Shown here: positions 9,228-59,211 of the stretch, one piece after another
Position numbering within the stretch: the first letter of the stretch is position 1
Layout of the letters: each line of letters begins with the position of its first letter
Sequence record: KY555145.1
DNA length: 64,000 bases
Direction: 5' to 3' (one strand)
The notes under the pieces: model-generated
Databases searched by the model: none
What the model was told of the DNA's origin: nothing
The model's input: the letters and a program-made list of their open reading frames with translations, nothing else
Made by a program: the position numbers and the translations under genes

Positions 9228-9282
9228 TCGAATTCCCGGCGCGGCAATCCCGCCGCCCCGGCCTTCCTTCGGAGCTTCCAAA

Positions 9283-9729
9283 ATGTTCGCTTCCGTGACC
9301 CTTCCCGCCCATGACGCCCAAGGCCTGAGCCTCGAAACCGTCCACATGGTTTTCGCCCGCGAACTGGCGCAACATTTCGACCACGTGACTTCCGCCCCCG
9401 TGGTCGAAAGCTGGACCGACGAGGAAACCGGCGCCGACCACGCGCAAGCCGCCGTCTGCTTCACCGTTTCGGCGACCCCGGCCGCGTGGGAAGCCAAGGG
9501 CGGGCGGCTCGCGCGCCGGCTGGAAAACCTCGCCGCGCGCTATGCCGCCGACTGCGACGCCCCGGCCCTGACTGTCACCCATTGCGACGGGCAAACGGTC
9601 TATGTCGGCGCTCTGGAAGCCCTGGCGCGCCCCGCTCCGGTGCAAGGCCCGACCCGCGACGCGGACCCGGCTTTCCTCCCCCGCCAGCGTGAGGACAAGG
9701 CCGCCCGCTTCGATCGCCTGACCGCCTAG
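9283..9729 (+). CDS. hypothetical protein (copy 1)
   Basis: GGAG RBS; near-identical to 11925..12371. Confidence 0.8.
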   Translation: MFASVTLPAHDAQGLSLETVHMVFARELAQHFDHVTSAPVVESWTDEETGADHAQAAVCFTVSATPAAWEAKGGRLARRLENLAARYAADCDAPALTVTHCDGQTVYVGALEALARPAPVQGPTRDADPAFLPRQREDKAARFDRLTA

Positions 9730-51667: not shown

Positions 51668-52444
51668 ATGGCCATCCAGAACCCCCATTCCACGACGCCG
51701 GGCGTGATGCCGCACCTGACTCCCGGAGAGGTCGGCGTCAACAAGGCCGACGACATTCTCTGGTTCCGCTCCCAGGGCCGGCGCGTGCCGATCATCCTGA
51801 GCGACCTCACCCGCGCCCCGCCGGCGGACGGCTATGTGGGCGCGCCCCTGGCCCTGGAGGGCGGCGCGCCGGTCTGGAACGTCAAGCTCTTGCCGTCCTC
51901 GATTGTCGCCGGCGCGGTCAAGGTCGACCTGCCGCCCGCCGCCGGCCTGCACGCCATGCCCAGCGTCCTGCTCCAAGGCCTGGGAACCGACCGCGTCCTG
52001 GCGGCCAACGACCTGGACCTCACCCCCTTCTATGTCCGCTCCGACTCCATCACCCTGACCCATCTGGCCTTCAGCGTGCGCTCGGCGGGCGCGCCGGCCA
52101 TGCGCGTGGGGATCGTCGATAGCTTCGGCGTCGTCCAGGCCGACATCCTGGTCGCCGCGCCGGTCGTGGGGGCCAATGTCGTGGCGCTCTCGCCGGTCCT
52201 GACCCTCCAGCGCGGCGTCTACCGCACCATCCTGGCGACGACCGGAGCGGTGACCGTGGGGATCGCCACGGGCGCGCGCATGGAACAGGGCTGGGACATC
52301 ATCGCCGACGCCCCGTCGTTCATCCACGGCTACAGCGGCAGCAAGAACACCGCTGGCGGCATCGGGAGCCTGCCGGCGCTGACCCCGCGCCGCGACCCCG
52401 CGCCGGGCCAGGATCACGCCGTCCTCCTGCGCTGGACGGCGTGA
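51668..52444 (+). CDS. fibre-associated protein
   Basis: PGEVGVNKADDILWF motif, paralogous C-domain. Confidence 0.7.
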   Translation: MAIQNPHSTTPGVMPHLTPGEVGVNKADDILWFRSQGRRVPIILSDLTRAPPADGYVGAPLALEGGAPVWNVKLLPSSIVAGAVKVDLPPAAGLHAMPSVLLQGLGTDRVLAANDLDLTPFYVRSDSITLTHLAFSVRSAGAPAMRVGIVDSFGVVQADILVAAPVVGANVVALSPVLTLQRGVYRTILATTGAVTVGIATGARMEQGWDIIADAPSFIHGYSGSKNTAGGIGSLPALTPRRDPAPGQDHAVLLRWTA

Positions 52445-52453
52445 ATCTTGACA
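52439..52453 (+). promoter_or_regulatory. late promoter motif
   Basis: GCGTGAATCTTGACA, TTAACC downstream. Confidence 0.7.
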
Positions 52454-52506
52454 CTCGGTCGAAATACGGTTAACCTGCGCGCTCATCTGGAGTTTCGAGC
52501 GCCAAC

Positions 52507-52773
52507 ATGGCCGAGCTTGTCCGCATCTATCACCCCGAGACGAACGAGCCGTTCGACGTGATTCCGTCGACCGCCGAACGTCTGCGCCTGGGTCAAGGTC
52601 TGGACGGTCTGGTGTGGCTCTCGCAGCCCTTCTCCCGCGCCGCTGCCGAAGAGCCGGCGCCGGAAGCCCCCAAGGGGCGAGGTCGTAAGCGCGTCGCCGC
52701 GCCCGTCTCGGACGAAGCCGAAGACGATGGCTGGCGTGACGCGCCGACCGAGGACGCTTCCGAAGCCGCGTAA
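52507..52773 (+). CDS. hypothetical protein
   Basis: 88 aa. Confidence 0.7.
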   Translation: MAELVRIYHPETNEPFDVIPSTAERLRLGQGLDGLVWLSQPFSRAAAEEPAPEAPKGRGRKRVAAPVSDEAEDDGWRDAPTEDASEAA

Positions 52774-52817
52774 GGCGCTTCCCCGTCCACTCTGCTGAAA
52801 TTCGGTCTCAGTCCCAT

Positions 52818-52893
52818 GTCGGTCTAGCTCATGGGGTAGAGCGGCGGTCTCCAAAACCGCGCGTGGCAGGTTCGAGTCCTGCGACCGGCGCCA
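52818..52893 (+). tRNA. tRNA-Trp(CCA)
   Basis: Cloverleaf, loop CT-CCA-AA, CCA end. Confidence 0.9.
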
Positions 52894-52898
52894 TTTCC

Positions 52899-52973
52899 GC
52901 GTCCATCGTATATGGGTTATTGCTTCGCGTTGCCAACGCGACGAACCGGGTTCGAGTCCCGGTGGACGCTCCA
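52899..52973 (+). tRNA. tRNA-Gly(GCC)
   Basis: Loop TT-GCC-AA, CCA end. Confidence 0.9.
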
Positions 52974-52979
52974 ATTCAT

Positions 52980-53053
52980 GCGGGTATAGCTCAAAGGGAG
53001 AGCTACTGCCTTCCAAGCAGAAGATGCGGGTTCGAGCCCCGCTATCCGCTCCA
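52980..53053 (+). tRNA. tRNA-Gly(TCC)
   Basis: Loop CT-TCC-AA, CCA end. Confidence 0.9.
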
Positions 53054-53074
53054 AATTTTTCTTCCACGACAAGC

Positions 53075-53103
53075 TTGACAGCCGTCGAGTTTTGTGAGAG
53101 CCT
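53075..53103 (+). promoter_or_regulatory. sigma70-type promoter, tRNA operon 1
   Basis: AAATTTTT UP tract, TTGACA, TTGTGAGAGCCT. Confidence 0.65.
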
Positions 53104-53112
53104 TCAACCACT

Positions 53113-53175
53113 ATGACGCACCTCCTGACCCGTTACGAACGCGAGGCCACCGGCCTCGATACCACCACCGCCTAA
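53113..53175 (+). CDS. leader peptide 1 (20 aa)
   Basis: MTHLLTRYEREATGLDTTTA overlapping the terminator hairpin. Confidence 0.6.
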   Translation: MTHLLTRYEREATGLDTTTA

Positions 53176-53202
53176 AAGCGGTTCTGGTAACCGAGGCCTT
53201 TT
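53152..53202 (+). terminator. attenuator terminator 1
   Basis: GGCCTCG/CGAGGCC outer stem, ACCA/TGGT and ACCGC/GCGGT inner stems, TTTT. Confidence 0.6.
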
Positions 53203-53209
53203 GTCATGT

Positions 53210-53287
53210 GGCCCGGTCGTCTAGCGGTTTGCAGGATTCGTGACTTTCAATCACGAGAGCGGAGTTCGAGTCTCCGTCGGGCCTCCA
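53210..53287 (+). tRNA. tRNA-Glu(TTC)
   Basis: Loop CT-TTC-AA, CCA end. Confidence 0.9.
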
Positions 53288-53308
53288 CCCAAAGTCTCCT
53301 CTGAGCTT

Positions 53309-53383
53309 GGTGCGTTCGTATATCGGTCAATACTCCGGATTGTCGATCCGGCAAGAGGGGTTCGATTCCCCTACGCACCGCCA
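53309..53383 (+). tRNA. tRNA-Asp(GTC)
   Basis: Loop TT-GTC-GA, CCA end. Confidence 0.9.
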
Positions 53384-53395
53384 GGGCTCCTCCCT

Positions 53396-53554
53396 ATGCC
53401 TCTTCAGTCGGGTTCGAGCGACGCCGTCGTCTCGCACAACATCGCCAAGCTGATCGACGAAGGCTACTCCAAGGAGCAGGCCGTGGCGATCGCCCTGTCC
53501 CAGGCGCGCAAGCCGCGCCGTCCGAAGGTCTCGCGCGGCTCACGCCGGCGCTGA
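53396..53554 (+). CDS. small basic protein (52 aa)
   Basis: [31 protein letters not shown], recalled phage family. Confidence 0.7.
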
Positions 53555-53623
53555 CCTCGCCTCGCTAAAGCACCCCAGTTCCCGGCCTCGTCGTGAGGCC
53601 GCCTGCGGTCGCGCGAGGCTTCC

Positions 53624-53848
53624 ATGACCTTTCTTGATCTTCGTTCGCAGTCGAGCGCCGCGCTCCTGCGCCATGTGTCTTCCCGATCCCCGATGGCGGA
53701 AGCGGCTCGCACCGAGTTGCTGACCCGAGGCCTCGTCCCGCTCCTCACGCGGCACAACGGCTGGCGCCTCGCCCCGAGCGAGCCCTTTCCGCAGCATCTC
53801 ATCCCGCGCCCCGATCCGCTCGCGAGGTTCACGTGGCGGGCGGGATGA
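53624..53848 (+). CDS. hypothetical protein
   Basis: GAGG RBS, 74 aa. Confidence 0.55.
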   Translation: MTFLDLRSQSSAALLRHVSSRSPMAEAARTELLTRGLVPLLTRHNGWRLAPSEPFPQHLIPRPDPLARFTWRAG

Positions 53849-53868
53849 AGATTTTTCTCACGACATGC

Positions 53869-53897
53869 TTGACATCCGTCTGAAGTTGTGAGAGCCT
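53869..53897 (+). promoter_or_regulatory. sigma70-type promoter, tRNA operon 2
   Basis: TTGACA ... TTGTGAGAGCCT, same design as 53075. Confidence 0.65.
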
Positions 53898-53991
53898 GTC
53901 CAACGTCACGGGTCACGACACTCCTCGTAGTGCAAAAGCGCGATCCTTCGTTATTCCCAGGCCGCCAGCGGGCGGCCGTTCGAGAGTCATC

Positions 53992-54138
53992 ATGTTCGCC
54001 TTGTCGCATAACAGCCTGAGCCTGAAAGCCGCCTCTCCGGCGACGCTTTCGCTTGCGCTGTCTCCGACGGCCGCGACGGCCGCGACGCCCTCGACCAAGC
54101 CGACCCACTCGGCCTCGCACTCGACGGATCACCTCTAG
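53992..54138 (+). CDS. leader peptide 2 (48 aa)
   Basis: MFALSHNSLSLKAASPATLSLALSPTAATAATPSTKPTHSASHSTDHL. Confidence 0.65.
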   Translation: MFALSHNSLSLKAASPATLSLALSPTAATAATPSTKPTHSASHSTDHL

Positions 54139-54203
54139 GGTATCTCGTCTCAGGTGCAGGCCTTGGAGCCGCACCCGCTACCAACATCCTGTTGACCTAG
54201 CGC

Positions 54204-54240
54204 AAGGCGGCTCCCAGCAAGGAGACCGCCTTTTCTTTTT
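54204..54240 (+). terminator. attenuator terminator 2
   Basis: AAGGCGGCTCC/GGAGACCGCCTT then TTCTTTTT. Confidence 0.8.
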
Positions 54241-54252
54241 CGCGTTGATCAT

Positions 54253-54328
54253 CGGGGTGTAGCTCAGTCGGTAGAGCGCTCGGTTCGGGACCGAGAGGCC
54301 GTGGGTTCGAGTCCCGCCACCCAGACCA
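54253..54328 (+). tRNA. tRNA-Pro(CGG)
   Basis: Loop TT-CGG-GA, CCA end. Confidence 0.9.
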
Positions 54329-54335
54329 ACGCCAT

Positions 54336-54410
54336 CGGGATGTAGCTCAGCGGTAGAGCGCGCGGCTGGGGGCCGCGAGGCCGCAGGTTCGAGACCTGCC
54401 ACCCCGACCA
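54336..54410 (+). tRNA. tRNA-Pro(GGG)
   Basis: Loop CT-GGG-GG, CCA end. Confidence 0.88.
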
Positions 54411-54415
54411 ACAAC

Positions 54416-54488
54416 GCTGCTGCGCCTGGATCGGCGCCGGCCCCTTGGTATGGGGAAGTAGAAGGTTCAATTCCTTCCAGCAGCACCA
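54416..54488 (+). tRNA. atypical tRNA-Thr(GGT)
   Basis: Perfect 7-bp acceptor G1-C72/C2-G71, loop TT-GGT-AT, aberrant D-arm. Confidence 0.6.
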
Positions 54489-54493
54489 ACAAC

Positions 54494-54563
54494 GCCGATG
54501 CCTCTAGGAGGACACGTCTTTCGTAATGACGTCAGGTGGGTGCGATCCCCACTTTCGGCTCCA
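54494..54563 (+). tRNA. atypical tRNA-Thr(CGT)
   Basis: GCC/GGC acceptor, ACGTC/GACGT stem, TT-CGT-AA closed by a T.T pair, small D-arm, CCA end. Confidence 0.55.
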
Positions 54564-54600
54564 TCAAGAGATGATCAAGGAGAGATCAGACGAAACAAAT

Positions 54601-54687
54601 GGATGTGTCACCTCAGTGGCGAGAGGACCGGGCTCTTAATCCGGCAGCGAAAGCTCATCGTGGGTTCGAGTCCCACCACATCCTCCA
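54601..54687 (+). tRNA. tRNA-Lys(CTT) with long variable arm
   Basis: Loop CT-CTT-AA; variable arm AGC-GAAA-GCT. Confidence 0.8.
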
Positions 54688-54692
54688 ATAAT

Positions 54693-54783
54693 GCACGAGT
54701 GACCCGAGTGGCGAAGGGCGTCGACTTTTAATAGACTAGGCGTCCGCGCCTCACCGAGGGTTCGAGTCCCTCCTCGTGCTCCA
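54693..54783 (+). tRNA. tRNA-Lys(TTT) with long variable arm
   Basis: Loop CT-TTT-AA; variable arm AGGCG-TCCG-CGCCT. Confidence 0.8.
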
Positions 54784-54789
54784 GGTTGT

Positions 54790-54873
54790 GCGAAAGTGGC
54801 GGAACGGCAGACGCACTGGTCTCAGGTACCAGCGACTTCGGTCATGAGGGTTCGAATCCCTCCTTTCGTACCA
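54790..54873 (+). tRNA. tRNA-Leu(CAG)
   Basis: Class II cloverleaf, CCA end. Confidence 0.9.
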
Positions 54874-54880
54874 ACGACAT

Positions 54881-54965
54881 GCCGGTCTGGCGGAAATGGC
54901 AGACGCAGTGGCTTCAAGTCCCACCGCCTTCGGGCGTCCCGGTTCGAGGCCGGGGACCGGCACCA
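54881..54965 (+). tRNA. tRNA-Leu(CAA)
   Basis: Class II cloverleaf, CCA end. Confidence 0.88.
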
Positions 54966-54970
54966 TTTGA

Positions 54971-55059
54971 TGCGAAGTGGCGGAACTTTGGTAGACGCAC
55001 CGGCATGAGAGGCCGGCGCCCTTCGGGGCGTGAGGGTTCGAGTCCCTTCTTCGCGACCA
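54971..55059 (+). tRNA. tRNA-Leu(GAG)
   Basis: Class II cloverleaf, loop AT-GAG-AG. Confidence 0.88.
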
Positions 55060-55066
55060 ATATAAT

Positions 55067-55138
55067 GCCGGACGGCGCAGGCGCGCGGGGGAGGTTGTGT
55101 CCCTCCTTGGCTCCGATCGTTACGGAGGTTCGGTTCCA
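55067..55138 (+). tRNA. atypical tRNA-His(GTG)
   Basis: GGAGG/CCTCC stem, loop TT-GTG-TC; non-canonical T-loop ATCGTTA. Confidence 0.55.
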
Positions 55139-55142
55139 TTAC

Positions 55143-55213
55143 GGGGTATGCGCAGGGCGCAGGCATCCTTTGCAAGGAAGTCGGGGTGGGTTCGAGTCCC
55201 ACATACTCCACCA
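55143..55213 (+). tRNA. tRNA-Ala(TGC)
   Basis: G3:U70 identity pair, loop TT-TGC-AA. Confidence 0.82.
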
Positions 55214-55217
55214 ACAT

Positions 55218-55305
55218 GGTAGGTTGGCTGAGAGGCCGAAGGCGCCCGTTTCGAAAACGGGAGGACCGCAAGGTTCCGTGGGTTCGAATCCCACACCTAC
55301 CTCCA
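55218..55305 (+). tRNA. tRNA-Ser(CGA)
   Basis: Class II cloverleaf. Confidence 0.9.
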
Positions 55306-55309
55306 ACAT

Positions 55310-55397
55310 GGATGTATGGCTGAGAGGCCGAAGGCGCCCGCTTGGAAAGCGGGTGAACCGCAAGGTTCCGTAGGTTCGAATCCTACTGCATCCGCCA
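55310..55397 (+). tRNA. tRNA-Ser(GGA)
   Basis: Class II cloverleaf. Confidence 0.9.
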
Positions 55398-55401
55398 ATA
55401 T

Positions 55402-55488
55402 GGTAGGTGGTTCCGGCCTGGGGCCGGACCCGGTTGCTAACCGGCCGGAGCCGCAAGGCTTGGGGTTCGATTCCTCCTCCTACCGCCA
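55402..55488 (+). tRNA. tRNA-Ser(GCT)
   Basis: Class II cloverleaf. Confidence 0.85.
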
Positions 55489-55531
55489 CTTCGATGTTGA
55501 CACCCGCAACGCGGCCTGTCATACGTCACGA

Positions 55532-55745
55532 CAGAGCGAACACCCCCCGGCCGGGTTTGTTGTCATACCGGGTCGTCACGCCCCGTCGGGGCTCTAGTAG
55601 CTCTTCGTGTGGAGTTTTCCGCCTCCCTCCCAGACAAGGAGGCGGACCCAACCAACATCGCGATCTCCCGTGATCGTCGGCGACGGGCGCCGTCAGAGAC
55701 CTTTGCCTGCGCGGCTTCGCTGCGGCCCTGGTCTCGTCCCGACCA
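55532..55745 (+). ncRNA. candidate structured small RNA
   Basis: Own promoter (TTGACA 55497, CATACG 55520); several hairpins; no convincing ORF. Confidence 0.4.
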
Positions 55746-55764
55746 AATTTTTTCGTCGTGGTGC

Positions 55765-55793
55765 TTGACACTGCGAAACTGTTCTGCTAGGGT
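55765..55793 (+). promoter_or_regulatory. sigma70-type promoter, tRNA operon 3
   Basis: AAATTTTTT, TTGACA, GCTAGGGT. Confidence 0.7.
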
Positions 55794-55800
55794 TCACGTC

Positions 55801-55899
55801 ATGAGCAAGACCTATCGTCAATTTGTGCGCCAGATTCAGGTCGTCCGGAATATCCGGGCGGGCCGCTCGCGCATGGCTGACGAAGGGTTCCGGGACTAG
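55801..55899 (+). CDS. leader peptide 3 (32 aa)
   Basis: MSKTYRQFVRQIQVVRNIRAGRSRMADEGFRD, nearly leaderless ATG. Confidence 0.7.
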   Translation: MSKTYRQFVRQIQVVRNIRAGRSRMADEGFRD

Positions 55900-55928
55900 G
55901 TCCCACTCCACGTTCAACCAGTTTCGCG

Positions 55929-55960
55929 AAGGCCCGCCTGGACACCCAGGCGGGCCTTTT
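55929..55960 (+). terminator. attenuator terminator 3
   Basis: AAGGCCCGCCTGG/CCAGGCGGGCCTT then TT. Confidence 0.85.
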
Positions 55961-56001
55961 CGCATTTCAGCTTCAGATCACGGAGATCGCCAAACAGACA
56001 C

Positions 56002-56086
56002 GGATGCTTAAAGCTGGAGGGCTCCAGCCGGGGACTGTAAATCCCCTCTCTTCGGAGGAGTGGTTCGATCCCACAAGCATCCACCA
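56002..56086 (+). tRNA. tRNA-Tyr(GTA)
   Basis: Loop CT-GTA-AA, long variable arm. Confidence 0.85.
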
Positions 56087-56091
56087 ACCAC

Positions 56092-56167
56092 GGACTCGTA
56101 GCTCAGCAGGTAGAGCGCCGGCTTGAAACCCCGGAGGTCGGAGGTTCGACTCCTCCCGTTTCCACCA
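56092..56167 (+). tRNA. tRNA-Phe(GAA)
   Basis: Cloverleaf, two acceptor mismatches. Confidence 0.85.
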
Positions 56168-56172
56168 ACAAC

Positions 56173-56248
56173 GCCCGATGAGCCAGATGGGAAGGCGCCG
56201 CCGCGACATGGCGGGATTGAGAAGGTTCGATTCCTTCATCAGGCACCA
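56173..56248 (+). tRNA. tRNA-Val(GAC)
   Basis: Loop GC-GAC-AT. Confidence 0.85.
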
Positions 56249-56250
56249 AT

Positions 56251-56326
56251 GCAAGTGTAGCTCAGTTGGTAGAGCAGCGGACCGATAATCCGCCCGTCCC
56301 TGGTTCGAGTCCAGGCATTTGCACCA
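56251..56326 (+). tRNA. tRNA-Ile(GAT)
   Basis: Loop CC-GAT-AA. Confidence 0.88.
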
Positions 56327-56333
56327 ATTCTGA

Positions 56334-56408
56334 TGTGGCATAGCTCAGGGGTAGAGCGCGCGCTTGATAAGCGTGAGGACGGGGGTTCGAAGCCCTCTGC
56401 CACTACCA
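56334..56408 (+). tRNA. tRNA-Ile(GAT)
   Basis: Loop TT-GAT-AA. Confidence 0.88.
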
Positions 56409-56441
56409 GTTTCCAGGCCGGCGGAGATGCGCCGGACCTGA

Positions 56442-56517
56442 TGGCGTTTAGCATAGTGGGAGTGCAGGGGTGTCACATACCTCGATCGAACTGGTTCGAT
56501 TCCAGTAACGCCAACCA
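56442..56517 (+). tRNA. tRNA-Val(CAC)
   Basis: Loop GT-CAC-AT. Confidence 0.85.
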
Positions 56518-56522
56518 ATCGT

Positions 56523-56596
56523 TGAGGGTTCGTCTAACGGTAGGACGGCTGGGTCTGGTCCAGCTAATCTAGGTTCGAGTCCTAGCCCCTCATCCA
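56523..56596 (+). tRNA. tRNA-Gln(CTG)
   Basis: Loop GT-CTG-GT. Confidence 0.87.
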
Positions 56597-56604
56597 AATA
56601 CTGT

Positions 56605-56680
56605 TCAGGGTTAGTTTAGCTGGTAAAACACTGGGTTTTGGCCCCGGCGTCGCTAGGTTCGAAGCCTGCACCCTGATCCA
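56605..56680 (+). tRNA. tRNA-Gln(TTG)
   Basis: Loop TT-TTG-GC. Confidence 0.85.
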
Positions 56681-56691
56681 TTTGAGTTTAT

Positions 56692-56766
56692 TCCAGTCAA
56701 TGCACAAGGTGTGCAGCGGCACTGTTAATGCCTGTGAGCCCGGTTCGATTCCGGGGTCTGGAGCCA
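56692..56766 (+). tRNA. tRNA-Asn(GTT)
   Basis: Loop CT-GTT-AA. Confidence 0.87.
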
Positions 56767-56792
56767 ACACGCCGGCCGAGGCCGGCACAAGC

Positions 56793-56875
56793 GCCCTGGT
56801 AACCGAGGGGGACTACGAATCCCTTAGTCGTAGCAGGAGTTGAAAAGGGTGGTTCGAATCCACTCCAGGGTGCCA
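56793..56875 (+). tRNA. atypical tRNA-Arg(ACG)-like, D-arm-less
   Basis: 7-bp acceptor, GGGGA/TCCCT with loop CT-ACG-AA, canonical T-loop, CCA end. Confidence 0.5.
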
Positions 56876-56882
56876 AATTCAT

Positions 56883-56965
56883 AGCGCGCAGGCCGAGCAG
56901 GATCATCGTCAGGCGTCGCCCTCCGAAGGCGAAGAGGCCCGGTTCGAGTCCGGGGCGCGCTGCCA
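56883..56965 (+). tRNA. tRNA-Arg(CCG) with enlarged D-loop
   Basis: Loop CT-CCG-AA; 17-nt D-loop. Confidence 0.8.
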
Positions 56966-56968
56966 TTC

Positions 56969-57046
56969 GCGCAGGTAGCTCAACGGACCCAGAGCGACCG
57001 TCTTCTACACGGAGGGTTGGGGGTTCGAATCCCTCCCTGCGCGCCA
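56969..57046 (+). tRNA. tRNA-Arg(TCT)
   Basis: Loop CT-TCT-AC. Confidence 0.9.
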
Positions 57047-57327
57047 AGCTTGACGAGTGATGCCGAATCGCTCAGCCTCCCGATCGGCTCTCGATGGGCC
57101 TCCACAAACCCAGTTCCGGACGATCTTCGAACGCGGCCTGCCGTGGAGGGGTGCTGGAAGGGCCGGGGTTGTGGAAACCGTCGAGCATCTCCTACATCCG
57201 GATCGGGCCTCCTGGGGGCTCCTCCGGTCAACCAGGGCCTGACCCGACCCCGGAGATGCGCCGTCTACGATCACCCAGGACCGTCCTGGCGGTGGAAAGG
57301 GTCTGAAATTTTTCTGGCGCTGATGTG

Positions 57328-57460
57328 TTGACACTCCTCGGAGGTTCGTCTAAAACCAGCAGCGTCAGAGCGGCGTTGGACCACGAGGTCCGCCGCGAGC
57401 TTCTGCGTTGTCGTCAGGAACGGCCCGTCAGCAATCCCGCTGGCGGGTCGTTTCGTTTTG
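57328..57460 (+). ncRNA. candidate ~100-nt small RNA with promoter and AAUCCC-loop terminator
   Basis: TTGACA, 17 bp, TAAAAC; hairpin CCCGTCAGC-AATCCC-GCTGGCGGG then T-rich tail. Confidence 0.5.
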
Positions 57461-57494
57461 GGCGCAATGCGACGTTCAGTCCAACCATGGGTAG

Positions 57495-57511
57495 TGTCAT
57501 GAATCTTGACT
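57495..57511 (+). promoter_or_regulatory. late promoter motif
   Basis: TGTCATGAATCTTGACT. Confidence 0.65.
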
Positions 57512-57579
57512 TTCGGCACTTATTCCGGTAGCTTTCCCGACATCAGCAAACGCTCACAAGTCGGGGACCGAGAGCCGTC

Positions 57580-57996
57580 ATGTCGCAAGACCACAACGGC
57601 TCGTCCTCGGGCCAAGAACGCATCTACCAGAAACTGGATGAGCTTGGCTCCATGCACGCGCGCACCCGTGAAGATATTGCCCGCATCCAGGAGATGATGC
57701 GAGCGGTCGGTTCGTCGCAGGAGCGGATCGAAAAGCGCCAGGATCATTTCGAGCGCGAAATCTGGCGTGAGATGGAAGACCGCGCCGCGCGCACGAGCGC
57801 CCAACTCGACGAAATCAAGAGCCACACCAACCTGCGCATCGAGGAGATCGAGGCCAAGGTCGACACGATCCGCGAGGAACGGATCGCCGAGAAGGCCCAG
57901 TGGCGCGGCCCCGAGAAGGCCATCGCCGCCCTGGTCGCCGTCGCCGGGGCCATCGCCGCCTTCGCCACGATCCTCACTTTCCTGAAGGGACACTAA
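57580..57996 (+). CDS. coiled-coil protein with C-terminal TM helix (holin/XhlA-like candidate)
   Basis: Coiled coil plus AIAALVAVAGAIAAFATILTFL. Confidence 0.6.
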   Translation: MSQDHNGSSSGQERIYQKLDELGSMHARTREDIARIQEMMRAVGSSQERIEKRQDHFEREIWREMEDRAARTSAQLDEIKSHTNLRIEEIEAKVDTIREERIAEKAQWRGPEKAIAALVAVAGAIAAFATILTFLKGH

Positions 57997-58088
57997 GGCT
58001 TATAGTCAAGCTTGCGCACCTGCGGCCAGAAGTCGCGCTTCTTGACACCCGATCTGGGCCGGCATAACCATAGGGCCATCGTTCCTGG

Positions 58089-58310
58089 GTGGAGTTTTCC
58101 CTAATGGCTGTCGCGCTTACTGTCGTCTCGGTTGAGACCGAATCTACCATCCAAGGTGTTGACCCCGACGCGGCGCATGGGCGCCTGATCGAGGTCCTGC
58201 ATACCGCCGCAGAAGCGGGTCTTGGGGAAATGACGTTGGAAGTCAAAGCGGAGATCGCGGCGCTGCTCCAGCAGGCGTCCGTGGAACTCTCCCACTGCCG
58301 GCCGGTGTAG
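58089..58310 (+). CDS. hypothetical protein
   Basis: 73 aa; start may be ATG 58104. Confidence 0.5.
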   Translation: MEFSLMAVALTVVSVETESTIQGVDPDAAHGRLIEVLHTAAEAGLGEMTLEVKAEIAALLQQASVELSHCRPV

Positions 58311-58344
58311 GGGTCCCGTAAATCGCCATCCCAGAGGGAGCGAC

Positions 58345-59211
58345 GTGTCCGAGTCTGCTGAGTTCAACCCGCTCGACCAAAATCAGTTCCCTCCTCGCCT
58401 CACCAAGGCTGCTGCGCGACAGGCGCGGCGCCAGGAGCGCAGCCAGAAAAAGGACCCCACGGCCAACAAGCCGAACTACAAGGCGCTCGAAGCCAAGACC
58501 GAACGCCAACGTCGCTATATCCAGGCCCTCAAGGCCGGTGAAAGCGTCATCGCCATTGGCGGAGCCGGCACGGGGAAGACCTATATCCCGTCCCGGCTCT
58601 TCGCCAAGAAGCTGATCGAGGCGAAGATCGAACGCCTGATCATCGCCCGCGTCACCGCCTCGCGCCCCAAGCACGCCCTGGGCTTCCTGCCCGGCAAGCT
58701 GGAAGCCAAGCTCGCGCCGTGGCTCGTCCCGGTGATCGAGGGCGTCAAGGCCGAGATGAACGCCCAGACCTACACGCAGTTGCAGGAAGCCGGCAAGATC
58801 GAGTTCGCCTCGTTCGAGCACATGCGCGGGCGGACTTTCGCCGAGTGCTGCGTCCTGCTCGACGAGGCCCAGAACGCCGACTACAAGGACCTGAAGATGG
58901 TCCTGACCCGCTGGGGCGAGAACGCCCAATACGCGGTCACCGGCGACATCGACCAGATCGACGTCGACGATTCGGGCCTGGAGACGGTCGTCGACATCGT
59001 CGAGACCCACGACATCCCGATCCACGTGATCGAGTTCACCGACGAGGACGTGGTCCGCTCGCCCATGGCCAAGGCCTGGGTCAAGGCGTTCTCCGCCCAC
59101 GAAGGCAAGGACGAACGGGCGCGGCGCTTCCACCGTCCCGCTGTCAGGAATCTTGACGTCCTGCCAGCTTTTATCGATAATGGCCGTGTCACGAAACCCG
59201 TGGCGTCGTGA
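58345..59211 (+). CDS. phoH: PhoH-family ATPase
   Basis: GGAGTGKT Walker A, LGFLPG, HMRGRTF, LDEAQNA, TRWGE, GDIDQID, DVVRS. Confidence 0.93.
   Translation: MSESAEFNPLDQNQFPPRLTKAAARQARRQERSQKKDPTANKPNYKALEAKTERQRRYIQALKAGESVIAIGGAGTGKTYIPSRLFAKKLIEAKIERLIIARVTASRPKHALGFLPGKLEAKLAPWLVPVIEGVKAEMNAQTYTQLQEAGKIEFASFEHMRGRTFAECCVLLDEAQNADYKDLKMVLTRWGENAQYAVTGDIDQIDVDDSGLETVVDIVETHDIPIHVIEFTDEDVVRSPMAKAWVKAFSAHEGKDERARRFHRPAVRNLDVLPAFIDNGRVTKPVAS
59142..59158 (+). promoter_or_regulatory. late promoter motif inside phoH
   Basis: TGTCAGGAATCTTGACG. Confidence 0.55.

Follow-up and report, generated by a model that had tools for sequence, protein, structure and literature searches.

Leader ORFs matched to downstream tRNA genes in Caulobacter phage Ccr29: candidate attenuators of phage tRNA groups

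The tRNA array of Caulobacter phage Ccr29 raises the question of whether the short ORFs that precede groups of its tRNA genes control the transcription of these genes. The window analysed here comprises 64,000 nucleotides and is identical to nt 1-64000 of KY555145.1 (Caulobacter phage Ccr29, phiCbK-like). The array is found at 52818-57046 on the + strand, as are all the Ccr29 features described below. A preliminary description had proposed that three sub-operons of the array each begin with a promoter, a short ORF and an intrinsic terminator facing a competing helix, and that the leader peptides are composed of the amino acids of the tRNAs that follow.

Leader units and tRNA groups

ARAGORN with default settings finds 25 tRNAs in the array, and relaxed settings add His(GTG), Ser(GCT), and two Arg. 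Tyr(GTA) at 56002-56086, the Thr(CGT)-like gene at 54494-54563 and Asn(GTT), which ARAGORN names 'Ile(aat)', were assigned via orthology to canonically called tRNAs in relatives; for Tyr and Asn this orthology rests on the annotated tRNAs of Gurke, Bajun, and Colossus. The Ccr29 Tyr, Thr-CGT, Asn, His, and Arg-ACG genes fall below the default detection thresholds, yet they are needed for the sets discussed below to be exact. These genes might be decaying.

Unit 1 opens with a putative promoter-like element at 53075-53102, consisting of TTGACA (53075-53080) and a conserved GTGAGAGCC (53094-53102). The -35 box is found at the same position in all relatives, and the ATG of the leader lies about 10 nt 3' of the element. 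Leader ORF 1 (MTHLLTRYEREATGLDTTTA, 20 aa, 53113-53175) precedes tRNA-Glu(TTC) and tRNA-Asp(GTC) at 53210-53383. Unit 2 has a similar putative element at 53869-53896 (TTGACA at 53869-53874, GTGAGAGCC at 53888-53896), so that the motif TTGACA-N13-GTGAGAGCC is common to both units. Leader ORF 2 (gp089, 48 aa) spans 53992-54138, and its tRNA group at 54253-55488 contains 14 tRNAs: Pro(CGG), Pro(GGG), Thr(GGT), Thr(CGT)-like, Lys(CTT), Lys(TTT), Leu(CAG), Leu(CAA), Leu(GAG), His(GTG), Ala(TGC), Ser(CGA), Ser(GGA), and Ser(GCT).

In unit 3 the putative promoter-like element at 55765-55793 combines TTGACA (55765-55770), a 15-nt spacer and GCTAGGGT (55786-55793). The ATG is found 7 nt past GCTAGGGT, as in leaderless mRNAs, and leaderless translation is common in Caulobacter. 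Erythrobacter phage L02, Sphingobium phage Lacusarx and uncultivated IMG/VR contigs have the same geometry in canonical form, TTGACA-17-TATCAT/TATACT-7-ATG. Leader ORF 3 (MSKTYRQFVRQIQVVRNIRAGRSRMADEGFRD, 32 aa, 55801-55899) is followed at 56002-57046 by Tyr(GTA), Phe(GAA), Val(GAC), two Ile(GAT), Val(CAC), Gln(CTG), Gln(TTG), Asn(GTT), Arg(ACG)-like, Arg(CCG), and Arg(TCT). A simple sigma-70 scan detected no promoter at the leader units; from the conserved -35 boxes we infer that each unit has its own.

All three leader ORFs are kept in Caulobacter and Brevundimonas phages. BL57, Colossus, Gurke, Bajun, and Kabachok retain leader ORF 1 at a length of 20-21 codons; its amino acids vary around an invariant E-x-E and an invariant D. 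Leader 3 is present in Shapirovirus, Poindextervirus, Colossusvirus, and three Brevundimonas phage lineages. In 10 phages it has 31-32 codons, with synonymous third-position changes and a 3-nt in-frame deletion, and its length stays fixed while its surroundings diverge, in the promoter spacer as well as in the 3' region. In silico, this pattern of change reads as a coding signature, and the leader ORFs are presumably translated.

Leader composition and the downstream tRNAs

The amino acids of tRNA group 2 are A/S/L/T/P/H/K, and an exact recount agrees with the preliminary description that 44 of the 48 residues of leader 2 belong to this set (44/47 without the initiator Met). The recount likewise bears out the run in leader 3, where the 15 residues of codons 5-19 are exclusively Y/F/V/I/Q/N/R, the amino acids of tRNA group 3. 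The codons of leader 2 cover all 14 downstream anticodons and codons 5-19 of leader 3 cover 10 of 11, although this coverage is not significant once the amino-acid sequence is given (P=0.15 and 0.11). When it comes to leader 1 there is no set enrichment, only 3/19 (3/19-20) residues being in the set. The preliminary description had called its Glu/Asp match weaker; the leader is conserved and structured.

With the amino-acid background of the phage itself as reference, the binomial P is 8e-15 for leader 2 and about 1e-6 for the run in leader 3. Among the window's 753 six-frame ORFs both leaders rank first, but the runners-up score 41 (of 47) and 12, so that in one genome alone the match is less extreme than the binomial values suggest. 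A permutation test, which had been suggested as a check, gave a strongly non-random result: none of 200,000 shuffles of the amino-acid labels reached the observed total, in Ccr29 and L02 alike (P < 5e-6). Assigning the leaders to their correct sets gives a score of 66 in Ccr29, where no other assignment exceeds 50, and of 57 in L02, where none exceeds 29. The leader-tRNA match is not due to chance.

Within the Dolichocephalovirinae the tRNA sets are invariant and the leader substitutions remain within the set. In the leader 2 homologues of Colossus, Gurke, Bajun, and Kabachok, 84-94% of the residues belong to the set in spite of low sequence identity, and 44 of the 49 alternative residues in columns 2-35 are within it. 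For the core of leader 3 this is the case for 11 of 13 alternative residues, compared to 8 of 23 in the tail and a mutational expectation of 0.23. The in-set changes of the core include non-conservative swaps (F/N, V/R, I/Y/N).

L02, Lacusarx and the IMG/VR contigs arrange their tRNAs in other groups, and the leader composition shifts accordingly, so the check for co-variation between leaders and tRNAs was positive. L02 has MFNVIAMNNPAPAIMVPVAMA... upstream of Pro, Pro, Met, Val, Ile, Ala, and Asn, MTFGRTKRDRREGDERGFTS upstream of Lys, Gly, Asp, Ile, Glu, Arg, and Phe, and MFTQTALHLLTQTTLCWQCQYSSLSPF (L02-C) upstream of Ser, Tyr, Leu, Thr, His, Gln, Cys, and Trp. Lacusarx carries MFTRFGKRDRREGERGFSL, and also MFTQTTLLTQCHYWQLLSSSSL (Lacusarx-C), in which 20 of 21 residues are in the set of the Ser-Tyr-Leu-Thr-His-Gln-Cys-Trp group that follows it. 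Seven IMG/VR contigs contain further variants. That the leaders follow the new tRNA groupings is the strongest evidence for a link between the two.

One may ask whether the ORFs rather encode functional micro-proteins, for instance low-complexity or basic peptides, whose likeness to the tRNA sets is coincidental. Leader 2 is indeed an annotated protein matching phrog_12742, a family of unknown function, leader 1 is conserved as a peptide sequence, and spurious frames in high-GC genomes often give peptides rich in A, S, T, and P, as the window runner-up at 41/47 illustrates. However, the residue order is scrambled between L02-C and Lacusarx-C while the composition is retained, Cys, Trp, His, and Tyr, which are rare, occur exactly where matching tRNAs follow, and no Pfam match was found. 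Together with the tolerated in-set swaps and the permutation result in two independent arrangements, this makes the micro-protein reading very improbable.

RNA structure and the proposed switch

The hairpins of all three units are independently annotated as rho-independent terminators in the GenBank records of phiCbK, Karma, and Swift. The terminator of unit 3 (55931-55962) consists of GGCCCGCCTGG (55931-55941), CCAGGCGGGCC (55946-55956), and TTTTCG, and 99.2% of its cells are paired in 10 phages. Upstream of it, at 55841-55864, segment 1 (55841-55848) and segment 2 (55854-55864) can form a 1:2 hairpin, while segment 2 has the 5' arm of the terminator as an alternative partner (2:3). The 1:2 helix has double-sided changes at column pairs 47:55 and 49:53; in the 2:3 helix 95.8% of cells are paired and three pairs have changed on both sides. 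Slid controls for the pairing of the unit 3 helices reached at most 68% paired cells.

Folding of the full-length unit 3 region gives 1:2 plus terminator in ten phages, and truncation 5' of the 3' arm gives 2:3 in all ten. A simulated ribosome footprint on codons 2-13 keeps 2:3, while one on codons 15-26 loses it, and L02-A folds behave in the same way. Unit 3 is thus predicted to contain the classical 1:2, 2:3, and 3:4 helices of an attenuator, each excluding its neighbour, and in silico these mutually exclusive helices are conserved. Since equilibrium folding favours 2:3 even without a ribosome, termination in unit 3 would depend on kinetics.

The unit 2 terminator (54207-54240; GCGGCTCC ... 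GGAGACCGCC then TTTTCTTTTT) is located 13 nt 5' of tRNA-Pro and is almost invariant across 11 phages; 3' of the Colossus leader 2 no convincing terminator was found. The switch region at 54111-54172 comprises a hairpin around the stop codon (54111-54162) and the segment GGAGCCGC (54165-54172), which is complementary to the 5' arm of the terminator. Gurke, Bajun, and Kabachok are predicted to form a comparable competing helix. In equilibrium folds the antiterminator of unit 2 forms at any ribosome position in the ORF, an insensitivity that counts against control by the ribosome.

The RNA elements of unit 1 are found at 53142-53205: helix A (53142-53148) is a competitor for B (53152-53158), the long hairpin B:C (53152-53198) carries an apical stem (53167-53182), and TTTTGTC (53199-53205) follows as a T-tract. 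Six lineages are predicted to form the hairpin, with covariation in its basal stem, while the T-tract is weak and shows no conservation. With a ribosome stalled at the first Glu codon the folds predict that the hairpin is favoured, which is opposite to a demand logic, and the regulatory logic of leader 1 as modelled is ambiguous. The layout described for the three units holds, with strong terminators in units 2 and 3 and a weak one in unit 1.

Taken together, units 2 and 3 are fairly likely to be ribosome-mediated transcription attenuators that gate phage tRNA sub-operons, as is unit 1 in some form. Each transcript would start from the unit's own promoter and open with a short translated ORF, whose codons are those read by the downstream tRNAs and which would be multivalent, covering seven to eight amino acids. 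When decoding is fast, the ribosome would run through or past segment 2, the 3:4 terminator would form and transcription would stop before the tRNAs. If matching charged tRNA is scarce, any such codon would be slow, and a ribosome stalled upstream of segment 2 would let it pair with the 5' arm of the terminator, so that RNA polymerase enters the tRNA genes. The new phage tRNAs would then relieve the stall, giving a negative feedback loop for each tRNA group. The direction of this regulation, from stalling to read-through, is probable, and the depletion, uncharging or anticodon-nuclease cleavage of tRNAs invoked in the preliminary description may be the physiological trigger. As first formulated, the demand model is supported in part: by the match, the co-variation and the unit 3 helices, but not by the unenriched leader 1, the position-independent unit 2 folds or those hairpins of the relatives that have no U-tract.

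It is possible, but rather unlikely, that the leaders sense the decoding of matching codons with an output other than stall-induced read-through of an intrinsic terminator. This could be Rho access, processing by RNase E or RNase P or stability of the tRNA precursor, or a reversed direction in which stalling leads to termination and tRNA synthesis is off during starvation. The ambiguous or reversed logic of unit 1 and the indifference of the unit 2 antiterminator to the ribosome are in line with such an output, and the C-type hairpins of L02 and Lacusarx, about 10 nt 5' of the first tRNA, have little or no U-tract. Moreover, the stop codon is found in a hairpin loop in all three Ccr29 leaders, for which the classical model has no need: in leader 1 it is in the apical loop of B:C, and in leader 3 in a small hairpin, GGGAC-TAG-GTCCC (55892-55904), which has a counterpart of other sequence in every lineage. 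However, the terminators of unit 2, unit 3, and L02-A are strong, conserved, and canonical with U-tracts, the segment that can pair with the terminator arm is kept with compensatory changes, and the in-set codons are placed directly 5' of it, a position also seen in the trp, his, and ilv attenuators.

It is hardly credible that these stretches only serve the tRNA precursors as structured non-coding 5' leaders or small RNAs, with incidental, untranslated ORFs. In favour of this reading, the RNA structure is strongly conserved, the Shine-Dalgarno sequences are weak, the 'AGRS' motif of leader 3 merely spells segment 2, and unit 2 has a conserved, structured 5' UTR of about 90 nt 3' of its promoter-like element, with compensatory changes in a GGCCGCC/GGCGGCC hairpin in Swift, Magneto, and Ccr5. 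Against it, the frames are open and of fixed length across lineages 60-70% identical, substitutions are synonymous or in-set, composition tracks the regrouping of tRNAs in L02 and Lacusarx, and the promoter-to-ATG geometry suits leaderless translation.

Comparison with known systems

The tRNA clusters of T4, T5, RcXuper, and Phosso resemble that of Ccr29 in being arrays with internal promoters, interspersed small ORFs and stable RNAs. However, the small ORFs of T5, RcXuper, and Phosso show no composition match to downstream tRNAs, and these three tRNA-rich phages are without matched leaders. The preliminary description knew of no attenuation of phage tRNA genes, and our literature search likewise found no report of leader-peptide control over phage tRNA clusters.

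In the T-box riboswitches of Gram-positive bacteria the choice between terminator and antiterminator also reports tRNA charging, and it controls genes that supply aminoacylation and decoding. The T-box, however, binds uncharged tRNA directly via a specifier codon without ribosome or ORF, and each element reads one tRNA; no T-box match was found within the window. The pheST attenuator with its pheM leader senses a single amino acid and controls the E. coli phenylalanyl-tRNA synthetase. Here too a component of the decoding machinery rather than amino-acid synthesis is attenuated, but the system is cellular and the regulated gene encodes a synthetase, while the tRNA-Phe gene pheV of E. coli is without a leader.

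The phage units are most readily compared to the attenuators of amino-acid operons (trp, his, thr, leu, pheA, ilvGMEDA/ilvBN), to which no sequence or Rfam relationship was found. Like these, each would combine a promoter of its own with a short ORF containing many 'regulatory' codons, 1:2, 2:3, and 3:4 helices of which neighbours are exclusive, and an intrinsic terminator before the regulated genes. A response to more than one amino acid is known from ilvGMEDA (Leu/Val/Ile) and thr (Thr/Ile), but the phage leaders cover seven to eight amino acids compared to one to three. They also differ in that the leader ORF crosses segment 2 and ends in a hairpin loop between segments 2 and 3, and in being located in a lytic phage. 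Finally, the phage units would regulate tRNAs and not enzymes, and the product would therefore directly relieve the stall. If this is true, leader-peptide attenuation extends to tRNA genes, as a previously undescribed feedback switch.

Organization of the tRNA array

The DNA was identified as nt 1-64000 of Caulobacter phage Ccr29 (KY555145.1), a phiCbK-like Shapirovirus. Its tRNA array is found on the + strand at 52818-57046 and contains 25 tRNA genes according to ARAGORN with default settings, and Rfam concurs for most of them. Relaxed ARAGORN settings added His(GTG) (55065-55148), Ser(GCT) (55402-55488), and two Arg genes, Arg(ACG)-like and Arg(CCG) (56793-56965). Tyr(GTA) (56002-56086), whose D-arm is unusual in being extended, a Thr(CGT)-like gene whose anticodon stem is degenerate (54494-54563), and Asn(GTT) (56692-56766), labelled 'Ile(aat)' by ARAGORN, were assigned by orthology to canonical calls or annotations in Colossus, Gurke, Bajun, Kabachok, and BL10; these genes are all on the + strand. 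The Tyr, Thr-like, His, Ser(GCT), Asn, and Arg genes are missed or mislabelled by default ARAGORN, Rfam, or the GenBank record. According to the phiCbK genome paper, none of the phages it covers has a Thr or Tyr tRNA; the three hairpins described below receive no comment in it. Both Lys tRNA genes are unusually long, 87-91 nt.

The array consists of four groups: Trp-Gly-Gly; Glu-Asp; Pro/Thr/Lys/Leu/His/Ala/Ser; and Tyr/Phe/Val/Ile/Gln/Asn/Arg. Ahead of each of the last three come a TTGACA box, a short ORF, and a hairpin with a T-run behind it. The boxes are found 20-120 nt 5' of ORFs of 20, 48, and 32 codons (leaders 1, 2, and 3, heading units 1, 2, and 3), a layout that is kept in at least ten phages, and the genes downstream of the leaders in Ccr29 are tRNA genes only. 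All three hairpins are given as rho-independent terminators in the phiCbK, Karma, and Swift records, an independent annotation based on TransTermHP. A generic sigma-70 scan detected no promoter at the leader units, so the putative promoters are proposed from their conservation only.

Another motif, (c)gtcgtgaatcTTGACA, is found at nine intergenic-looking sites on the + strand of the window (22154, 25097, 28177, 33162, 35909, 52448, 57506, 59153, and 61172). It differs from the TTGACA-N13-GTGAGAGCC form of units 1 and 2 and probably represents a phage promoter class. Near the left end of the genome, at 1788-1892, five close copies of (cg)ttTTGACGcg are found within about 110 nt, which may form an iterated binding site or else a cluster of promoters. 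Many leaders start with ATG TTC (Met-Phe) regardless of the tRNA set downstream (window 53992 and, in loci extracted from relatives, L022 4610 and 7732, L027 5368 and 6695, L021 9002, and the IMG/VR loci L029-L035). Several leaders are situated exactly 7 nt past a -10 hexamer, a spacing which suggests leaderless mRNAs and perhaps a common initiation requirement.

Some further features are found between the units. About 230 unannotated nt separate tRNA-Ser(GCT) from the promoter of unit 3 (55497-55753). Within this stretch a promoter-like TTGACA lies at 55497 and a hairpin with T6 at 55730-55753, but there is no convincing ORF; in the same interval Karma has an annotated reverse-strand CDS, and Swift an extra ~600 bp. 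A conserved GC-rich segment of about 200-290 nt, with the motif ...GGCCGTGCGG...GAAGGCCATATGC...GGCGCCGG(G)CCAGCAGG..., lies between tRNA-Gly(TCC) and the promoter of unit 1 in Poindextervirus, Colossus, and the Brevundimonas phages (L003 1848-2140, L004 1861-2150, L015 3030-3230, L014 3690-3880). It is partial in BL57 and missing from Ccr29 and phiCbK, and it looks like a structured RNA. Neither of these two neighbouring RNA-like stretches has a match in Rfam. A 74-codon ORF at 53624-53848, unannotated in Ccr29, is an annotated gene in phiCbK, Karma, Magneto, and Ccr5, and in phiCbK a 498-nt reverse-strand gene is inserted between this ORF and unit 2. The region just 5' of the promoter of unit 3 holds a peptide deformylase gene in Colossus, Gurke, Bajun, and Kabachok, and in some of these also a metallophosphoesterase gene (L012 3790-4311, L014 10522-11064, L020 8258-8935, L021 7641-8183). 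The position of the deformylase gene indicates that translation-related functions cluster with the tRNA array.

Leader composition and tRNA identity

The preliminary description proposed that the leaders are composed of the amino acids of the tRNAs that follow them. For leader 2 (53992-54138) its count is exact: 44 of 48 residues, or 44/47 without the initiator Met, belong to A/S/L/T/P/H/K (set 2). Leader 3 (55801-55899, ATG at 55801) contains, as described, YRQFVRQIQVVRNIR, 15 residues that use only Y/F/V/I/Q/N/R (set 3) and include all seven. When the amino-acid frequencies of the long ORFs in the window are used as background, where sets 2 and 3 cover 0.40 and 0.33, the binomial P for leader 2 is 8e-15, and a run like that of leader 3 has a probability of about 1e-6. 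Both leaders rank first among the 753 six-frame ORFs of this high-GC window; the runners-up reach 41/47 and a run of 12, so a single genome is suggestive rather than decisive. The permutation test asked for in the preliminary description gave a clear result, as none of 200,000 label shuffles attained the observed total of 66/97 (P < 5e-6), and in Ccr29 the correct leader-to-set assignment scores 66 compared to at most 50 for the five wrong ones. The weaker match suggested for leader 1 (53113-53175) did not hold; with 3/19 residues in its set (P=0.4) it is not enriched, and it fits set 2 better than its own, so composition matching was rejected for this leader. Codon-level design beyond the amino-acid level was likewise rejected. 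The leader codons cover 14/14 downstream anticodons for leader 2 and 10/11 for leader 3, but coverage of this order follows from the peptide sequence and from codon usage (P=0.15 and 0.11).

The three leader ORFs occur in each of the Dolichocephalovirinae lineages that were examined, that is Shapirovirus, Poindextervirus (BL10, Rogue, RBC8), BL57, Colossusvirus (Colossus, CcrPW), and the Brevundimonas phages Gurke, Bajun, and Kabachok, and leaders 2 and 3 retain their enrichment in set residues in five to seven lineages. Between Ccr29 and BL10, leader 3 differs by five synonymous substitutions at third positions and an in-frame deletion of 3 nt, while the promoter spacer is unalignable, and in ten phages its length is constant at 31-32 codons. 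Leader 3 bears a coding signature and is presumably translated. Its aligned peptides include MSKTYRQFVRQIQVVRNIRAGRS..., MMTYRNNVRQIRVRQFNLAGRS..., MMTYRQNVQNIRVVRFYRAGRS..., and MTSYRQNVQNIRVVRFNRTGRS.... In the core, 9 of 14 columns are variable, yet 11 of the 13 alternative residues are in Y/F/V/I/Q/N/R (mutational expectation 0.23), and some of the exchanges, F/N, V/R, and I/Y/N/F among them, make no physico-chemical sense. Of the 23 alternative residues in the C-terminal tail, only 8 belong to the set. The invariant 'AGRS' spells RNA segment 2, the strand shared by two of the predicted helices. Homologues of leader 2 have little common sequence and still have 84-94% of their residues in the set, and in columns 2-35 this is the case for 44/49 alternative residues. 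This indicates that composition, and not sequence, is selected, as would be expected of a codon sensor but not of a folded peptide. A 9-nt tandem duplication in Ccr29 leader 2 (GACGGCCGC twice, 54066-54083) is absent from ten other aligned phages; it inserts Thr-Ala-Ala, three codons that are all in the set.

The tRNA sets are constant across the Dolichocephalovirinae, and true co-variation was therefore sought outside the subfamily. Erythrobacter phage vB_EliS-L02 is Cbk-like with 58% GC and has a tRNA order unlike that of Ccr29. In each of its three units a canonical promoter (TTGACA-17-TATCAT or TATACT) leads into a short ORF that is followed by a hairpin. The leader MFNVIAMNNPAPAIMVPVAMACVEGTRD precedes Pro, Pro, Met, Val, Ile, Ala, Asn; MTFGRTKRDRREGDERGFTS precedes Lys, Lys, Gly, Gly, Asp, Ile, Glu, Glu, Arg, Arg, Phe, Arg; and MFTQTALHLLTQTTLCWQCQYSSLSPF precedes Ser, Tyr, Leu, Leu, Thr, His, Gln, Gln, Ser, Cys, Trp, Thr. 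Amino acids that are separate in Ccr29 are here joined (P and A with V, I, and N; G, E, D, and K with R and F), and the leaders follow, which is the co-variation that the preliminary description had proposed to look for. The matrix of leaders against sets is strongly diagonal, with 20/27, 15/19, and 22/26 compared to at most 7 off the diagonal, and none of 200,000 label shuffles attained it.

Sphingobium phage Lacusarx has two orthologous units. MFTRFGKRDRREGERGFSL is followed by Lys, Lys, Gly, Asp, Glu, Glu, Gly, Arg, Phe, and MFTQTTLLTQCHYWQLLSSSSL by Ser, Tyr, Leu, Leu, Thr, His, Gln, Ser, Cys, Trp. The latter has 20/21 residues in its set, with all eight amino acids, in an order that is scrambled relative to L02. 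The counterpart of the first L02 leader (A-type) is absent before Pro(CGG) in Lacusarx. Seven uncultivated IMG/VR contigs carry further leader variants, for instance MFTQTALQSLTGSLLCWHSQYSSLSPF, ahead of similar arrays. A scan of IMG/VR with the unit 3 motif pattern recovered only already known phages. No matched leaders were found in Rhodobacter phage RcXuper or Sinorhizobium phage Phosso, where the best P in the same scan was 6e-3 over 21 tRNA runs. L02 also has a very hydrophobic, Leu-rich ORF of 37 codons (MLVAIGILILICLLGG..., 9231-9344, L022) that abuts tRNA-Leu(TAA) with no terminator between them. It has zero TTA codons and is probably a membrane peptide, not a leader.

Predicted RNA switches

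The preliminary description stated that each unit has a helix competing with the terminator, and for unit 3 the folds agree with this. The helices are named by four segments, where 1:2 is the anti-antiterminator, 2:3 the antiterminator, and 3:4 the terminator. Full-length folds gave the same predicted arrangement in 10/10 phages: a 1:2 hairpin (55841-55848 with 55854-55861, + strand), a small hairpin with the stop codon of leader 3 in the loop (55892-55904), and the terminator 3:4 (55931-55956, then TTTT). When the transcript is cut before the 3' arm of the terminator, codons 18-21 instead pair with the 5' arm in a 2:3 helix of 12-13 bp. With a ribosome modelled as a 28-nt masked footprint, the sequestration probability of the terminator arm is about 1.0 when codons 2-13, which are the in-set codons, are in the A-site, and 0.1-0.6 for codons 15-26, where the ribosome is over segment 2. 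In the alignment the terminator is paired in 99.2% of cells compared to at most 68% with slid partners, and the antiterminator in 95.8% compared to at most 55%. Three antiterminator pairs are altered on both sides; Bajun has G to A in segment 2 and C to T in segment 3, and Colossus GU to UA. RNAalifold independently gives 1:2 and 3:4, with compensatory changes in 1:2. The first unit of L02 (L02-A) folds in the same way. A mutually exclusive set of helices with codons placed to be compatible with stalling is thus predicted for unit 3 in ten phages and for L02-A, and unit 3 appears to have the anatomy of a textbook attenuator.

The terminators of units 2 and 3 have GC-rich stems of 9-13 bp and U-tracts and are nearly invariant. 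For unit 2 the terminator is strong (54207-54240, + strand), and its 5' arm has a complement in GGAGCCGC (54165-54172); folding predicts comparable helices for Gurke, Bajun, and Kabachok. The competing helix is thus present, but its coupling to the ribosome is not evident. Equilibrium folds with ribosome masking gave no switch, the antiterminator forming at any ribosome position, and the leader 2 ORF terminates 5' of the switch elements. The coupling might be relayed by the hairpin containing the stop codon (54111-54162). Colossus has no convincing terminator at the position of unit 2.

Unit 1 is predicted to form a long hairpin whose basal stem covaries and whose apical loop holds the stop codon, and the small competing helix A:B is kept through compensatory changes. 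The T-tract, however, is weak and variable, and a stall on the first Glu codon of leader 1 is predicted to favour the hairpin. The C-type hairpins, found in L02 and Lacusarx, have a slight U-tract or none.

The stop codons of all three leaders are situated in hairpin loops (53167-53182, 54111-54162, and 55892-55904), and other lineages share the arrangement although their sequences differ. In the classical attenuation model no stop codon is called for in this position, and the placement may therefore matter, possibly with a role in ribosome release or timing.

A putative sensor of decoding and its relation to known attenuators

Units 2 and 3, like the equivalent units of related phages, are likely to be leader-peptide attenuators gating tRNA sub-operons. 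A ribosome that decodes any codon of the downstream tRNAs slowly would stall 5' of segment 2, the antiterminator 2:3 would then form, and the tRNAs would be transcribed, while rapid decoding would allow the terminator to form. Since the tRNA products would relieve the stall, each tRNA group would be under negative feedback. The sensor half, in which leader codons match tRNA identities and are selected as a set, is strongly supported by the sequence comparisons. The output half, that is intrinsic termination and the direction of regulation, is well supported by the folding models for unit 3 and L02-A and plausible for unit 2. Translation, the transcription start sites, read-through, and the physiological trigger are inferred. 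According to the preliminary description, a tRNA group would be transcribed only when the cognate host tRNAs are depleted, uncharged, or cleaved; a trigger by anticodon nucleases is compatible with the results, and amino-acid starvation would trip the same switch. An RNA-seq time course of phiCbK has been published (PMC10688885).

On balance, we lean towards a wider reading as well, in which Cbk-like alphaproteobacterial phages carry a codon-resolved decoding homeostat where stalling on a multivalent leader turns on the matching tRNA sub-operon. The phages in question infect Caulobacter, Brevundimonas, Erythrobacter, and Sphingobium, and uncultivated relatives are included. If so, the phage would provide tRNAs as they are needed, for example once those of the host have become diluted, degraded, uncharged, or cleaved by anticodon nucleases.

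The reasons why large phages carry tRNA arrays are debated and include compensation for codon usage, replacement of host tRNAs degraded in infection, and escape from tRNA-cleaving defences. To our knowledge, next to nothing is known of how such arrays are regulated. A cis-acting sensor of decoding speed would mean a demand-driven and feedback-controlled tRNA supply, group by group, and would make the rival hypotheses directly testable, offering an experimental route to when, and for what reason, phages express tRNAs of their own. The leaders also serve tRNA annotation, as they predict Tyr, Thr, Asn, and His tRNAs despite the absences reported in the original genome papers, and they could be reused as compact synthetic sensors of tRNA availability.

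Classical attenuators control genes for amino-acid biosynthesis or transport, or aminoacyl-tRNA synthetase genes. No target of this class is found in the Ccr29 units, and as only tRNA genes are downstream, the units were not assigned to a described attenuator family. A permissive cmscan of 52000-58500 gave only tRNA-type and chance-level matches, with no T-box or Rfam leader (His_leader, Trp_leader, Thr_leader, Leu_leader, and others). Of the three leaders, leader 2 alone matches a PHROG, of unknown function, and none belongs to a Pfam family. No description of leader-peptide control of tRNA genes was found in the full-text literature searched, including papers on phiCbK, Lacusarx, the phiCbK RNA-seq, and pheL, older subscription journals being outside its coverage. 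Two possible precedents were rejected: small ORFs in the tRNA region of phage T5 resemble ordinary proteins, and Escherichia coli pheV is without a leader, its promoter being directly before the tRNA.

Functionally, the phage units resemble the trp, his, thr, and ilv attenuators, and like ilvGMEDA they are multivalent. They differ in that the targets are tRNA genes, that each leader covers 7-8 amino acids, that they are found in a lytic phage, and that the ORF runs across segment 2 to a stop codon in a hairpin loop. If the reading is true, attenuation is extended to a new target class, the RNA components of translation, with an unprecedented multivalency of 7-8 amino acids, and these units would be the first attenuators on tRNA genes and the most multivalent known.
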